DNA of 43,599 nucleotides from Octopus sinensis (lineage: Eukaryota): contig NW_021834977.1 of assembly GCF_006345805.1 (NCBI RefSeq), positions 1 through 43,599 of the forward strand. The letters run 5' to 3'. Both the position numbers and the translations under genes were made by a program. Position 1 is the stretch's first letter. Each line of letters opens with the position of its first letter. Shown piece after piece: positions 16,696 through 27,654 of the stretch. The notes under the pieces are model-generated. The model was not told the DNA's origin. It saw nothing but the letters and a program-made list of their open reading frames with translations, and did not search any database.

Positions 16696-18120
16696 CTATT
16701 TATTTTTCGTATCAACGATGTGTTGATGTAATCTGTCCTCCGTGTTACTAAGACGGTGTTCGAGTACACCCACAGTCTACATAGTTATTTCCATATCCAA
16801 CCTCTGTCAACATGTCCAGTTGTCCTGTTATTCTATCGAGAGCCTGTTTTATATTCAAGACAAAGTCAGAAAAATGTTCGTCTGTTTGTCCACCGTTGAG
16901 CTGTTTAACATGATTCTGAGGATCTTCATTTCTCGGAAGACTTTGATCCTCCGCAGCTGAACAATAGTCGGTCTCGTATTTTTTCATATTAGTCTCATTT
17001 TCTTTTTCCTGCACTTTTTTAACCGCCAAATCAAAATTGGTTTTCCACAAAAAAAGTTGTTCGTCTGCCCCGCCTGTTGCAAAGTTTTGGCCGTCACATG
17101 AAAACTTGATTGCTGTGACCGAGTCCTTAAAGGTCACGTGTCTCAACAAACTTTGTGACCGTGGATTGTGTAGAAGAGTCTCCCTTCGATCAAATCTAAA
17201 ACTTTGGCTGTTCCATCAGAGGAGGCAGTGATTAAATAGTTCCCGGAAGGGTGGAAGGAGATGTCGTTTACTGAGGCATTGTGCACTAAAAATAATTTTT
17301 AAATAAAAAACCAGCATAGTTTTGAATTAGTTTATAACTACGAATGTCCCAGATCTTGACTGAACCATCGTCAATTCCTCCTCCAATAAAATACCCCCCA
17401 GGATGGAATCTGATTGATGTCCCTCGAGAGTTATCAAGACGGAAAGTCTGGACGGGGTCTTTGATAGCTCGATCCCACAGACGGACAGTCTTGTCGTCAC
17501 TTACAGAAGCAAAACTACGGCTGTCTGGCGAAAAACTTAAATTTGTCAAAACTCATTACCTCGCTGACCTAACCCAATTCGAATGATGAATGTACGAGGA
17601 TTGGAATCTCTGTCTGTGAGTTGTCCATATCTGTAAGAAGAACTCCTAGCTTATATACCTTGACTGACTTGTCGTCAGAACATGTGATAAAGCATTGCCC
17701 GTCGTGACTAAATTCGACATGTCGGACAGCAGCAGTGTGCCCGACAAAGCTTGTACTTTCACCTTTCCTACTAATGATATGATCGAGGTATACGCTGAAG
17801 GAATCCACAGTCTTACGGTCTTGTCCTTCGAAGAAGAGGCCAACAATGCTCCTGACGGAGAGAAGGAGACGCAAGTCGTGGAATCCTTAATAATCAGTCA
17901 ATTTTAATACTTTGTGCCCAGCAAGTCTTATCACGTGTAGACGAGGATAGATTTTCCATAAAATTACTGCGGAGTCCAACGATGAGGAGGCAAGTTGTTT
18001 TCCATTTACATTAAAGTCAATTCCAGTTATTGTATCTCGATGTCCTGACAAACTTTGTTGTAAAAAGGGCGAGGACTCATCCTTCCAAATAATCTAATTA
18101 ATTACTTGCACTGTCTTCAT
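16696..18120 (-). CDS. POC1: POC1 centriolar protein (7 WD40 repeats + C-terminal Poc1 coiled coil), 9 exons, 406 aa
   Basis: Introns 18105-18082, 17910-17886, 17793-17768, 17658-17631, 17559-17536, 17311-17286, 17151-17126, 16801-16777 (24,25,26,28,24,26,26,25 nt; all GT-AG). Spliced CDS of 1221 nt is open: [62 protein letters not shown]. Confidence 0.95.
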
Positions 18121-18289
18121 TTTCGCTATTTCCTAGCAACAATTTATAATTATTCTTTAAAATTAGTAATATTAAAAATATTATTTGTCTTTATAGATGA
18201 GAGTCATTAAACTAAAACTCGCAGAGTACTTTGAAAGAATACAGTTGAAGACAAATTCCATGTTTTAACAAATATTTGACTTTATTCAT

Positions 18290-18510
18290 TTTCAGATTAT
18301 TAGTATTAAATATATCTGGGGTTTTTACATATGGCTACGAAGGCTGGTTTGGTACGGAGAAAGACTACTTTATCAAACAGTTAAAAAAGACAAGATGTAT
18401 CGCATTGAAACTGCCTTACAGAGTACAACTTGACGGAAGGCTTGAAGACTTGCAAGAGTCCTTTGTGCCCACTATCCGGATGGTCCTGGAGAAAGGTTGT
18501 GTTGAGTAAT
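18290..18510 (+). mobile_element. LINE (jockey/I-like) post-RT fragment
   Basis: FTYGYEGW...RCIALKLPYR...VPTIRMVLE resembles the LxYGxExW and later segments of APE-type LINE ORF2. Confidence 0.35.
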
Positions 18511-24629: not shown

Positions 24630-24927
24630 ATCAACAAGAATTTACAACCAAATTCAAATCAGTTTATTATTTTATTTAAATAAATATTTGTTTAATTTAA
24701 TTAATAAAAAAACTGCATTTTATCAAATAATAAAAATTTTCTTTAAAAAAAAAATTTATAAACCAAGATCGTGCTAAATCTAATCATTGAAAATGTCTTT
24801 TTCGGTGGCAGTTTTGATAAGACAGTTTTTAGCTTAAATTGATTTTAGATAAAATATTTATTTAAAATTCAAATAAAATTAATAATTATTATTTTAATCA
24901 TAATATATTAACAAGTTCCTGGTGGTG

Positions 24928-27654
24928 ATGATTAGTCCGGATACTCAGCTTGATCTCAGTACTCAGAAAGTCCATTTTTACCCCCCGACCCCTAGGGATC
25001 TCCCTCAGATTTTAAAATGCTTGAAATCATTGGTAGGGGAACATATGGAACAGTCTGGAAAGTATAATTAGCCCGCCAATTTGCAGGCAATTCACACCAA
25101 GTCAGGCCAACTCACTGCAGTCAAAATCGTCTTTCTAGAAAAGGTACTGCCCTTGGAATTCGGGCTCGGAATGTGACCTAATTCCATAGGAGGACATTGA
25201 AGGCTTCAGACTTGAGGTCGATATTTTGAGAAAAGTTGGTTTTTTATTTAAAATAAGTTTTCCCGCCATCCGAATATAGCCAACTACTTTAGTTCGTTCA
25301 TTAATGTGCCATTTCGCGGGAAAACTGAGGAATTGTGGATTGTAATGGAGTTTTGCAGTATGGGCACACTAGAGACAATAATAAAAGGTATTTTATTTAT
25401 TTTAAAATTAATAATTAGCAACAAAAACAAATATGATGCCCGAAAATTGGATAGCGTTTGCTACGCGGGAAATATTATCCGTTTGACGTGGTGCCACTTA
25501 TTTGTAAGGGATTGGCACATCTCCACCAAAACAACATCATCCACAGAGATATAAAAGGCCAGAATATTCTAATAACACACCGATGTGAGATCAAACTGGG
25601 TATATTGTTATTTCTATCAATTTTTAGCTGATTTTGGGGTGAGTGCCCTCCTGGACAAGTCGATTGGAGGACGGAATACATTCATAGGCACTCCCTATTG
25701 GTCAGACCTCCCATTTACCCATAGGATGGCCCCAGAAGTGATCAACTGTGAGACAGAACGTCGAGCAACCTACGATGGGAGGGTAAAACCCCCAAAATAA
25801 CAAAAATAGTGCGATATCTGGTCCTTGGGAATAACAGTCATCCAAATGGCAGAGGGAAAGCCTCGTACGTATAATCTGGCTAATTCTCAGCCCTGTCTGA
25901 CTACAATGCCATGAAGGCTCTCCTCCTCATCCCCACAATCGCCTCCCCTAAACTAAGAAGACAGAAAGCAGCCATTTGGTCTGCCAAAATGCACGATTTT
26001 ATAAGCCAATGCCTGCAAAGAAATCACCACGCCCGTCCCAAGGCAGATACCCTCCAATCCCACCCATTTGTGACCCTGGAAGAAGCTCAAGTCCGACAAA
26101 CCATCAAGCAAATACAAGAACTGTGTTGTAGGGACTCCCGAAAGAGTCTGGATGGTAGAGAAGGTGAGTAATGTGTAGTGGTGACTCACCTGGGCAGCCC
26201 TTTGAGGAGTCCCGAGATATCAAAGACAAGGAGAGACCCCGTAGGCAATGTGGATGTGACTATAAAACACCCACTTTATAACCCCGAGTCGACGTTGGTA
26301 GTAGAAAGTCCCAATGCGAGACATAAGAGTCCTCCGATGGGGGAATATCCCACGGAAAAGTCGTGTTTGTGTGTAATGTCTCAGCGTTCGTAAGACAGGC
26401 AAGTTTAAACTAAAGAAGGCGACCCCTCCTGACGAGTGCCCCACTTTAAACGAACAGTCTTCGTCGTCCTCGGTGTCTATTAAGCCACAAATGGTGCCTG
26501 AAATAAAGAAATATAAAATAAAATTTCATTCGGAGATATTTTGTGCGAGTGTGGTTGGGGTGAATCTGTTTGTGGGGACATCGCAAGGACTGTTCCTTCT
26601 CGACCAGTCAGGACGGGGGGACTGTATGAGTGGGATGTGATGTGGTAGTGTATCAGCTTATGAAGGAGTCAGTTTTCCAAGTTGAGGTGTTGGAAGGTCT
26701 GAACTGTGTGGTGTTGATAATGCGGCAAATATACAGTCTGAACTGCATTCCTTTGAACTATCTGCTTCAATCAGTCAATCAGAAGAAAAGACATCCAGTA
26801 GTGAGTAGACAGTTGATATGTCGCACATTTGTGGATTGTACGTATTTCAAGACAGTTCGGATTGATGGAAATATGTTTTTGGCTATTGCTGTTGGTTTTT
26901 CGATTGAGATTTATACGTGGCACAAGGAGCCTCATTCTATGTTTATGCCTTATAAGGTAGACTTGTGTGGTCATTCCAGGCGGTCAAGTCACTCCCTGAC
27001 CGTCCTCTGCTGGTCAATTTGGCCTACGACTGTCAGAAGAATATGAAAGTGATTTACGGGTCGTCCAAGGGATTTCATATTTTTAATTTTAAAACCAACT
27101 CGGTGACGGAGATTTACACTTCTGAGGACACGGTGATATCTGGGTGTGATTTGTAGATGACGGGGACTATTATTCCTCATGATGTGGTGGTGTACCCCAT
27201 GGATGACCGCAATGTGTGTTTGTTGGTCCTTTTTAATAGTATTTGTACTTATTTAGTTTAGATCGTGGGATATTTGTTGATTTGGAGGGTAGACTGGTCA
27301 ATGGGAAGCCAGAAGTGCAGTTTAGTGAGGAGACGTGTAATGTCAGTTTGTCTTTGGCTTTATAACAAGCTTACCTGCCGCCTGATTTGCTGTTGGTTTG
27401 GAATAGGGAGTCCATTACGATGATGTCCGCGGTGTCCGGGTGTGTGTTGGGGTATTTTGTGCACAAGAAATTGGAGTCGTTGCACTATTTGTGTAGTCGG
27501 GACAGAAATGTAGTGAGTGTGTGGATGTTTGTAGGTCTTTTTCAGTAATGGAAAGACTGCACATTCTCTCCCACAGTTGTATATACTTACACTGTGTGAT
27601 GCAATGTCCCCCGGGAGGGATCGTGTGTCGAGTTGGGCTAGCAAAAGTGTTTAG
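24928..27654 (+). CDS. MAP4K4: MAP4K4/MINK/TNIK (misshapen, GCK-IV) Ste20 kinase with C-terminal CNH domain, 19 exons, 750 aa
   Basis: Introns 24970-24995, 25062-25086, 25144-25189, 25235-25257, 25388-25418, 25481-25508, 25600-25627, 25701-25724, 25783-25809, 25865-25890, 26155-26178, 26363-26384, 26624-26648, 26957-26979, 27133-27156, 27239-27261, 27346-27369, 27510-27534; spliced CDS of 2253 nt is open. Motifs [41 protein letters not shown]; [17 protein letters not shown]...GVNLFVGT. Assigned to the family, not a specific vertebrate paralogue. Confidence 0.93.

Follow-up and report, generated by a model that had tools for sequence, protein, structure and literature searches.

The window, i.e. 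the whole 43,599-nt stretch of DNA that was analysed, carries two protein-coding genes on opposite strands, whose coding sequences are predicted to be interrupted by 26 very short introns. The POC1 protein shows the layout of seven WD40 repeats followed by a C-terminal coiled coil, and Pfam returned six WD40 repeat matches on the spliced product. The spliced kinase matches the Pkinase profile once over its full length (profile 2-263/263) and the CNH profile in full (profile 2-253/255). A preliminary description had proposed hand-built models of both genes, with 8 introns and a CDS of 1221 nt for POC1 and 18 introns and a CDS of 2253 nt for the MAP4K. Both were exactly reproduced when the models were rebuilt from the sequence, and the length distribution and the GT-AG termini reported at that time were identical in the rebuilt models. 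The lengths comprise 22 nt (one intron), 23 nt (three), 24 nt (six), 25 nt (five), 26 nt (five), 27 nt (one), 28 nt (three), 31 nt (one), and 46 nt (one), with a mean of 26.1 nt and a median of 25 nt. Thus, 24 of the 26 introns fall between 22 and 28 nt, and GT-AG termini were found in all 26. The coordinates of all features are listed in Table 1.

Table 1. Coordinates of both genes and their modelled micro-introns within the window. Support gives the number of orthologue-guided alignments that place the intron at these coordinates; the last column names orthologues with an intron at the same site.
Feature	Position	Strand	Length (nt)	Phase	Support	Orthologues and remarks
POC1 centriolar protein gene	16696..18120	-				9 exons, 8 micro-introns, CDS 1221 nt, 406 aa
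POC1 intron 1	18082..18105	-	24	0		After codon 5; ORF requires removal
POC1 intron 2	17886..17910	-	25	0	14/14	Patella, Acanthaster
POC1 intron 3	17768..17793	-	26	2	14/14	Patella, Acanthaster
POC1 intron 4	17631..17658	-	28	0	13/14	Patella, Acanthaster
POC1 intron 5	17536..17559	-	24	2	14/14	Patella, not Acanthaster
POC1 intron 6	17286..17311	-	26	1	13/14	Patella, Acanthaster
POC1 intron 7	17126..17151	-	26	0	14/14	Patella, Acanthaster
POC1 intron 8	16777..16801	-	25	0	6/14	Acanthaster
Msn/MAP4K4/mig-15-type kinase gene (kinase + CNH domains)	24928..27654	+				19 exons, 18 micro-introns, CDS 2253 nt, 750 aa
Kinase intron 1	24970..24995	+	26	0	7/12	Lottia, Helobdella
Kinase intron 2	25062..25086	+	25	0	12/12	Lottia, Helobdella, frog NRK; after VWK
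Kinase intron 3	25144..25189	+	46	0	12/12	Lottia, Helobdella, frog NRK; longest
Kinase intron 4	25235..25257	+	23	0	12/12	Lottia, Helobdella
Kinase intron 5	25388..25418	+	31	1	12/12	Lottia
Kinase intron 6	25481..25508	+	28	0	12/12	Lottia, frog NRK
Kinase intron 7	25600..25627	+	28	1	12/12	Lottia, Helobdella, frog NRK
Kinase intron 8	25701..25724	+	24	2	12/12	Lottia, Helobdella, not frog NRK; inside GTPYW|MAPE
Kinase intron 9	25783..25809	+	27	0	12/12	Lottia, Helobdella, frog NRK
Kinase intron 10	25865..25890	+	26	1	12/12	Lottia, Helobdella, frog NRK
Kinase intron 11	26155..26178	+	24 (as modelled)			Linker; provisional junction; in-frame TAA at about 26169 forces removal
Kinase intron 12	26373..26394	+	22 (as modelled)			Linker; provisional junction; frame change needed
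Kinase intron 13	26624..26648	+	25	1	12/12	Lottia, Helobdella
Kinase intron 14	26957..26979	+	23	0	11/12	Lottia, Helobdella, frog NRK
Kinase intron 15	27133..27156	+	24	0	12/12	Frog NRK (exact); shifted by one codon in the alignments with Lottia and Helobdella
Kinase intron 16	27239..27261	+	23	1	12/12	Lottia, Helobdella
Kinase intron 17	27346..27369	+	24	1	12/12	Lottia, frog NRK
Kinase intron 18	27510..27534	+	25	0	12/12	Lottia, Helobdella, frog NRK

The junctions were examined with a protein-guided spliced aligner that used a flat length prior of 15 to 300 nt and was guided by 14 POC1 and 12 kinase orthologues. The same coordinates were obtained for 23 of the 26 introns (POC1, 7/8; kinase, 16/18), mostly unanimously. 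The remaining three junctions have no homology anchor, namely POC1 intron 1 and the kinase linker introns 11 and 12. For POC1 intron 1, a phase-0 intron follows codon 5 in both Patella and Acanthaster; the N-terminus encoded in the window is too short for rigorous alignment. Both linker introns have equally open alternatives of 15 to 34 nt: the linker around intron 11 is without homology and can be read with 26164-26178 (15 nt) or 26168-26197 (30 nt) removed, and for intron 12 different orthologues select alternatives of 16 to 34 nt between 26360 and 26398. POC1 intron 8 lies in the less conserved coiled-coil tail. At kinase intron 18, a 22-nt variant (27513-27534) likewise preserves the frame.

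Intron positions were compared with those of orthologues, counting only exact matches of position and phase and using binomial P values. In the kinase, 15 of 16 testable introns coincide with introns of Lottia (P = 3e-29), the 16th being one codon off, 12 of 16 coincide with those of Helobdella (P = 9e-23), and 10 of 15 with those of the frog NRK paralogue. For POC1, 6/6 introns coincide with Patella (P = 8e-13) and 6/7 with Acanthaster (P = 1e-12), and all seven testable introns have a counterpart in one or both species. This is equivalent to 39 exact matches over four invertebrate orthologues, where fewer than 0.2 would be expected per comparison. Together with the homology-guided junctions, this coincidence argues for real micro-introns, as had been claimed. 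The orthologue introns at these sites measure 100 to 10,000 nt (100 to 8000 nt in molluscs), and with the Lottia and POC1 matches they support the earlier suggestion that the micro-introns would be ancestral introns reduced in length and not newly gained ones. Several kinase positions had been described as shared with vertebrate orthologues. The one after VWK is indeed present in the frog family member, whereas the one in GTPYW is missing from the frog NRK paralogue, though it occurs in Lottia and Helobdella.

The splice signals are sparse. The 5' site is essentially GTA, with A at +3 in 17 of 26 introns and no consensus at +4 to +6, and the 3' site is reduced to AG and otherwise weak, G at -3 being found in none of the 26. 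Pyrimidines average 59% at -12 to -3, and only two introns reach 0.8 or above, i.e. a pyrimidine tract is essentially absent. YTNAY occurs in 14/26 introns, CTAAT in two, and CTGAT in one. These counts bear out the preliminary description, which had noted a minimal 5' consensus, few polypyrimidine tracts, and scattered branch motifs. An A stands at -8 in 14/26 introns (P = 0.004), at -9 in 13/26, and at one of these two positions, as a candidate branch A, in 21/26. The candidate branch A is found at +17 from the 5' end in 14/24 and at -8 from the 3' end in 13/24, so that anchoring to either end is indistinguishable in this small sample. No snRNA genes were found in the window.

With regards to the source organism, positions 15183-25680 of the window (10.5 kb) are 98.5% identical to VCDQ01012038.1, an unplaced contig of 26 kb in the O. 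sinensis assembly GCA_006345805.1. The POC1 and kinase proteins share only about 50% identity with their orthologues in cephalopods and other molluscs, and the best kinase matches are found among spiralians (molluscs, annelids). The window has a GC content of about 36% and is rich in remnants of RT, RNase H, DDE, and hAT (transposase) sequences. Dicyema japonicum, which was obtained from O. sinensis, has a GC content of 36.7% with 49% repeats (PMC6736024). The window thereby agrees with the traits expected of a dicyemid genome, i.e. spiralian-like metazoan genes, approximately 36.7% GC, and a repeat-rich composition with LINE RT copies. Since the identity to an octopus contig is combined with such low protein identity to cephalopods and molluscs, the DNA almost certainly belongs to a dicyemid, a kidney parasite of the octopus. 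Most likely it is of the genus Dicyema, a renal-sac parasite of Octopus sinensis, where the species name is deduced from the contig match and the traits in the literature.

Micro-introns of this kind are already known as a signature of Dicyemida and have been published since 2007 (PMC2222250, PMC6543705, PMC6736024, PMC13644364). Aruga (2007, PMC2222250) found a mean of 26.2 +/- 1.9 nt and conserved positions from genomic/cDNA comparison in Dicyema, Zverkov (2019, PMC6543705) reported a dicyemid median of 27 bp, and the subject is also treated in Ogino (2010), as cited in PMC6543705. Hadjez (2026, PMC13644364) described splice signals of which little more than GTa and AG is left, with weak A's preceding the AG, and the statement in the preliminary description that such lengths lie far beneath the range handled by most metazoan spliceosomes agrees with this literature. 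The 26 introns of the window share all of these features with Dicyema japonicum and Dicyema sp.: a mean of 26.1 versus 26.2 +/- 1.9 nt with a narrow range, GT-AG termini with GTa and AG ends, weak upstream A's, a missing or short polypyrimidine tract, and conserved positions, in addition to the GC content, the repeats, and the link to the octopus. No substantive difference was found, and POC1 and the Msn/MAP4K4-type kinase are further examples, with the species assigned by proxy. For other Dicyema genes, the absence of the introns from mature mRNA has been shown (PMC2222250; Lu 2019, PMC6736024). By analogy, the segments in both genes of the window are presumably removed in the RNA, splicing in dicyemids being known from the literature only. 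A transcript-derived near-identical protein was not found in a collection of 5.8 billion proteins, which was searched with full-length queries and a 160-aa junction-spanning piece.

Ciliates have introns of the same length class with GT-AG ends, measuring 20 to 35 nt (mean 24.8 nt) in Paramecium, as cited in PMC2222250, and 15 to 16 nt in Stentor, as cited in PMC13644364; short length is compatible with a conventional U2-dependent spliceosome. However, ciliates are unicellular and many have reassigned stop codons, whereas in the window TAA, TAG, and TGA all act as stops that break reading frames, TAG terminates the ORFs, and orthologues and intron positions are metazoan. The orthonectid Intoshia linei is likewise a parasitic, reduced spiralian whose genes are compact and of similar intron density, but its intron median is 57 bp, mostly above 30 bp, in contrast to the 22-28 nt class found here (PMC6543705).

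An open reading frame alone is weak evidence for the gene models, because unconstrained dynamic programming yields many alternative GT-AG paths that keep the frame open. It could be argued that both genes are decayed pseudogenes whose frames were 'repaired' during hand-fitting by common GT...AG pairs 22 to 28 nt apart, and the two kinase linker junctions are truly ambiguous. However, the models are not over-fitted, since the flat-prior aligner and the orthologues select the same coordinates, the Pfam domains are complete, and the spliced POC1 aligns with its orthologues over 295 aa with zero gaps. Orthologue alignments are gap-free across the junctions, every interruption starts with GT and ends with AG, and the 39 position and phase matches are far beyond expectation; a fitting artefact is effectively refuted. 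The weak or missing branch-point and polypyrimidine signals could also point to a removal or bypass without the major spliceosome, be it by U12-type splicing, ciliate-like DNA elimination, or translational bypass. Here, the uniform GT-AG termini speak against it, and neither the U12-type 5' motif /[AG]TATCCTT nor the branch motif TCCTTAAC occurs in any of the 26 intron sequences. Ciliate-type IES features were absent as well, with no TA-bounded ends among the segments. In other animals, ordinary U2-type introns occupy these positions, and Dicyema cDNA/genomic comparisons revealed ordinary splicing (PMC2222250), which leaves such a route a negligible probability next to U2-type splicing.

The dicyemid origin has to be weighed against two other sources. 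GenBank labels the matching contig and its protein as Octopus sinensis, so that the genes might be those of the octopus itself. This is hardly credible, as the contig is an unplaced piece, the kinase shares only about 51% identity with MINK1 of the octopod Argonauta hians, no more than with any mollusc, and the mollusc introns at identical sites are long. Somewhat less improbable, though still very unlikely, is another animal with ultra-short introns, i.e. either a myxozoan of the myxobolid group or an undescribed metazoan associated with octopuses. Myxobolids (Henneguya, Thelohanellus, Myxobolus) are reduced parasitic animals with median intron lengths of 22 to 27 nt, GTa/AG ends, weak upstream A's, and conserved positions (PMC13644364). 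However, they belong to the cnidarian lineage and have fish and annelid hosts, while the window is near-identical to an octopus-assembly contig and octopus renal sacs are filled by dicyemids (PMC6736024). The GC content fits D. japonicum and not Henneguya (29%), the top kinase matches are spiralian, and POC1 intron 5 is found in the mollusc Patella but not in the starfish. POC1 is a centriole and cilium protein, which agrees well with a heavily ciliated dicyemid but poorly with myxozoans; to our knowledge, the latter have neither centrioles nor cilia.

Taken as a whole, the window very probably represents dicyemid nuclear DNA with intact POC1 and Msn/MAP4K4-type kinase genes, whose compressed ancestral introns are presumably spliced by a U2-type spliceosome. 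Both would be ordinary animal genes with spliceosomal introns reduced to a narrow length class, which the canonical U2-type (GT-AG) machinery would remove by intron definition on minimal signals, i.e. a 5' GTA, a 3' AG without G at -3, and almost no polypyrimidine tract. The branch point would probably be the adenosine 8 to 9 nt upstream of the AG, corresponding to +16/+17 from the 5' end, and the narrow length range probably contributes to recognition as a length ruler. Since retention of 25 of the 26 introns introduces a frameshift or a stop into the ORF, copies left unspliced would be open to nonsense surveillance, with a putative role of NMD; the exception is kinase intron 8, the sole 3n intron without an in-frame stop. 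How dicyemid micro-introns are recognised is still open according to Hadjez et al. (2026, PMC13644364). It is conceivable, though rather unlikely, that recognition depends on geometry instead of sequence, so that a fixed-distance adenosine, together with a 'ruler' of 22-28 nt, takes over from the branch-site consensus and the polypyrimidine tract. If true, an animal spliceosome would have altered requirements for SF1/U2AF/U2. Both the A peak and the lack of a pyrimidine tract in the 26 introns are compatible with geometric recognition.

Introns shorter than 30 nt were long held impossible in animals. With them, the minimal requirements of the metazoan spliceosome can be probed, as already argued for dicyemids (2007-2019) and myxobolids (2026), and the window adds two clean homology-anchored examples. 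It had also been stated that standard gene finders miss such introns, and the NCBI model of the POC1 locus in the octopus assembly, labelled 'POC1 centriolar protein homolog A-like [Octopus sinensis]', demonstrates this directly. In place of five micro-introns, this model has introns of 34 to 56 nt; at six junctions it loses between 2 and 10 conserved residues, it runs through the final intron, and it needs 6 gaps against orthologues. The standard pipeline mis-modelled POC1 because introns under about 30 nt are not called, and when such genomes are annotated, the minimum intron length needs to be set to about 15 to 20 nt. As a dicyemid-like contig stands annotated as octopus in the public Octopus sinensis assembly, the micro-intron architecture could be used to flag contamination in cephalopod genome screens.

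The window is AT-rich eukaryotic DNA (~36% GC), and its six-frame track was broken into short open pieces of a WD40 protein (minus strand, ~16.7-18.1 kb) and of a protein kinase with a CNH domain (plus strand, ~24.9-27.7 kb). The preliminary description had assembled these pieces into two genes, the centriolar protein gene POC1 and an Msn/MAP4K4-type kinase, and its intron counts, CDS lengths, and length distribution were reproduced exactly when both genes were rebuilt. The POC1 introns measured 24, 25, 26, 28, 24, 26, 26, and 25 nt, while pooling both genes (n = 26) gave one intron of 22 nt, three of 23, six of 24, five of 25, five of 26, one of 27, three of 28, one of 31, and one of 46 nt. 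Phases 0, 1, and 2 were found in 15, 8, and 3 introns, respectively, and the shortest exons went down to 15-45 nt. Retention would cause a frame shift or a stop for 25 of the 26 introns; the sole intron that is both stop-free and a multiple of three in length lies inside the invariant kinase motif GTPYWMAPE, between GTPYW and MAPE. In-frame stops were present in six of the seven introns with a length divisible by three (e.g., 18082-18105, 17536-17559, 25783-25809, and 27133-27156), where shuffles led us to expect 3.6 (P = 0.06). This excess hints at selection against "invisible" retained introns, as described for Paramecium, but is not significant at n = 7.

Features of the window with their coordinates
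Feature	Position	Strand	Description
LTR-type RT/RNase H	1073-3624	+	decayed element
Microsatellite	4509-4960		long ATT/AAT-type run in the ORF listing (read as poly-I/N/Y)
DDE (Tc1/mariner-like) transposase fragment	5877-6308	+	decayed element
Microsatellite	11716-12000		long TA/CA-rich run in the ORF listing
POC1	18120..16696	-	8 GT-AG introns, open CDS of 1221 nt (rebuilt from sequence)
RT (RVT_1) ORF	19310-22200	+	broken by stops, then integrase-like stretch (by eye); between POC1 and the ADO gene
PCO_ADO (2-aminoethanethiol/cysteamine dioxygenase) ORF	24015-24629	-	intact, intron-less, 204 aa, E = 2.8e-24
Kinase	24928..27654	+	18 GT-AG introns, CDS of 2253 nt (rebuilt from sequence)
NAV-like third gene	~28030-30060	+	downstream of the kinase; short fragmented ORFs like POC1 and the kinase
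Microsatellite	32390-32530		long (CAGA)n-like run in the ORF listing
hAT dimerisation domain	40731-41144	+	decayed element
Another RT	42531-43393	-	decayed element

The opening of a reading frame is by itself weak evidence, because unconstrained dynamic programming over GT...AG pairs yields many other open paths. ORF-maximizing or intron-minimizing versions over all GT-AG pairs returned wrong models, in which coding sequence was skipped or "introns" of 15-20 nt appeared. Given the many alternative paths, an orthologue-guided spliced protein-to-genome aligner was written instead (BLOSUM62, GT-AG ends, the same flat penalty on all introns of 15-300 nt), and 14 POC1 and 12 kinase orthologues served as guides. 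For POC1, the aligner picked the hand-model coordinates of seven of the eight introns, six of them with 13-14 of the 14 orthologues and the last with 6 of 14. For the kinase, 16 of 18 were recovered; 11-12 of the 12 guides agreed on fifteen of them, and 7 agreed on the first. Although the method has no preference for that range, 21 of the 23 recovered introns were 22-28 nt long. The two linker introns of the kinase (26155-26178 and 26373-26394), located in a non-conserved stretch, are modelled junctions with equally open alternatives of 15-34 nt. For the first, these include 26164-26178 and 26168-26197, and for the second, variants within 26360-26398; the donor of the last kinase intron may lie at 27510 or at 27513. 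The junction of POC1 intron 1 is likewise that of the model, as the N-terminus before it (intron after codon 5) is too short for alignment. In the spliced kinase, Pkinase was matched once and over its full length (profile positions 2-263 of 263, E = 3.5e-63), and CNH was also matched in full (2-253 of 255). The spliced POC1 needed no gap over ~295 residues when aligned with its orthologues from starfish, mollusc, annelid, and macaque. The micro-intron observation holds, and the preliminary description portrayed it accurately.

Five orthologue proteins were each mapped on the genomic locus of their own gene, and the resulting intron positions and phases were compared with those of the window in the same protein coordinates. 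Exact position-and-phase matches in the kinase were obtained for 15 of 16 introns against Lottia gigantea (with the 16th one codon off), 12 of 16 against Helobdella robusta, and 10 of 15 against the frog family member (Spea NRK). The corresponding values for POC1 were 6 of 6 against Patella caerulea and 6 of 7 against Acanthaster planci. All testable POC1 introns are common to at least one of these two species, and in both of them codon 5 is followed by a phase-0 intron that resembles POC1 intron 1. By chance, fewer than 0.2 matches per comparison would be expected (binomial P of 1e-12 to 3e-29). The lengths of the orthologous introns range from 94 to 10,000 nt, and the kinase gene of Lottia has ~32 introns compared to 18 in the window. 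The shared positions, the longer introns of the orthologues, and the lower intron number therefore argue for a loss of some ancestral introns and a shrinkage of the rest rather than for gain. This supports the earlier proposal that ancestral introns had shrunk and were not newly gained. Of the vertebrate matches named along with it, the position after VWK is indeed occupied in the frog gene, whereas the one in GTPYW is absent from the frog NRK paralogue but common to Lottia and Helobdella.

The window is labelled Octopus sinensis, yet its kinase is only ~51% identical to those of the octopod Argonauta and other molluscs; we therefore conclude that it is not cephalopod DNA, but stems from an organism travelling with octopus tissue. 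The renal sacs of octopuses are filled by dicyemids. POC1, as a centriole and cilium protein, fits a ciliated dicyemid, and the window combines ~36% GC with many RT, RNase H, DDE, and hAT remnants. The genome of Dicyema japonicum, isolated from O. sinensis, has been described with 36.7% GC and 49% repeats, and LINE RT copies abound in it (PMC6736024). We infer that the window most likely belongs to Dicyema. The protein collection was searched with both complete proteins and with a 160-aa piece of POC1 that spans junctions, and no transcript-derived proteins of the source organism were returned.

The top POC1 match bears the GenBank name "POC1 centriolar protein homolog A-like [Octopus sinensis]" and is encoded on the 26-kb unplaced contig VCDQ01012038.1 of assembly GCA_006345805.1. 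Positions 3133-13605 of this contig are 98.5% identical to window positions 15183-25680 over 10.5 kb. As the same micro-intron genes lie on it, the contig very probably represents dicyemid contamination under an octopus annotation; no report of this turned up in the literature searched. The NCBI POC1 model at this locus differs from the micro-intron model at the junctions only. It uses introns of 34, 35, 44, 48, and 56 nt, and six of its junctions each lack 2-10 conserved residues. The last intron is read through, which gives a spurious C-terminus. Six gaps are required in the alignment of this model to orthologues compared to none for the micro-intron model. The expectation that standard gene finders miss such introns was thus borne out, and a dicyemid-like contig annotated as octopus, with a mis-modelled public protein, is worth passing on. 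The 1.5% differences between both sequences were uninformative as a test of exon versus intron constraint, with eight indels (seven of them single-base) falling inside kinase exons. In total, 55 indels were counted, mostly single-base and all confined to the flanks of the alignment (~15.2-16.5 kb and 23.7-25.6 kb), which we read as long-read consensus error in a low-coverage contig. Collinearity ends at window position 25680, inside a kinase exon. Contig positions 1-3132 have 52% GC and contain ORFs resembling non-LTR RTs as well as ORFs resembling the histone H3 N-terminus (MARTKQTARKSTG...). This junction reflects either the insertion of a transposon into the contig's copy or a chimeric assembly join.

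Micro-introns as such are already known. In 2007, Aruga et al. reported 16 introns from seven Dicyema genes, based on a comparison of genomic with cDNA sequence; their length was 26.2 ± 1.9 nt, and their positions were conserved (PMC2222250). Dicyemid introns have a median of 27 bp, with two thirds below 30 bp (PMC6543705). In 2026, Hadjez et al. showed that myxobolid myxozoans share this length class and described, for both lineages, signals that have shrunk to GTa and AG, with weak A residues upstream; according to these authors, how such introns are recognized has yet to be established (PMC13644364). All defining features of dicyemid micro-introns that can be read from DNA were found in the window, and the interpretation put forward in the preliminary description is supported.

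The splice signals were similarly sparse. At the 5′ site, GT was followed by A in 17 of 26 introns with nothing consistent further in, while G never directly preceded the AG of the 3′ site. Pyrimidines made up only 59% of positions -12 to -3, and YTNAY occurred in 14 of 26 introns, CTAAT in 2, and CTGAT in 1; compared to exons, the introns were T-rich and C-poor. An adenosine was found at -8 in 14 of 26 introns (P = 0.004), at -9 in 13, and at one or both positions in 21. This peak corresponds to +16/+17 from the GT (A at +17 in 14 of 24), while A at +10 occurred in only 1 of 24 introns; because the lengths are so uniform, this small sample does not tell which of the two intron ends sets the position of the adenosine. 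An Rfam scan detected no snRNA genes in the window. Judging from the sequence and the literature, the best-supported account would be that an ordinary U2-type spliceosome removes these introns by intron definition, relying on minimal signals. The likely branch point is the adenosine at -8/-9, and recognition probably also involves the uniform length. For 25 of the 26 introns, nonsense surveillance could serve as a backstop. With regards to recognition, the window adds only a small-sample confirmation of the upstream A.

The NAV-like gene presumably also carries micro-introns. It comprises a NAV1-type AAA+ lid (29834-30058, E = 4e-10) with coiled-coil-like ORFs ahead of it and a weak, sub-threshold NPHP3_N match (29202-29696). 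Its largest ORF piece obtained two matches only (E ~7e-4) in a full HMMER scan of 1.8 billion representatives, and it contributed no extra introns to the sample because it is too divergent for homology-guided modelling. The PCO_ADO ORF is arranged head-to-head with the kinase, ~300 nt upstream of the kinase start. Most of the remaining window consists of decayed mobile elements, consistent with the repeat content reported for D. japonicum.
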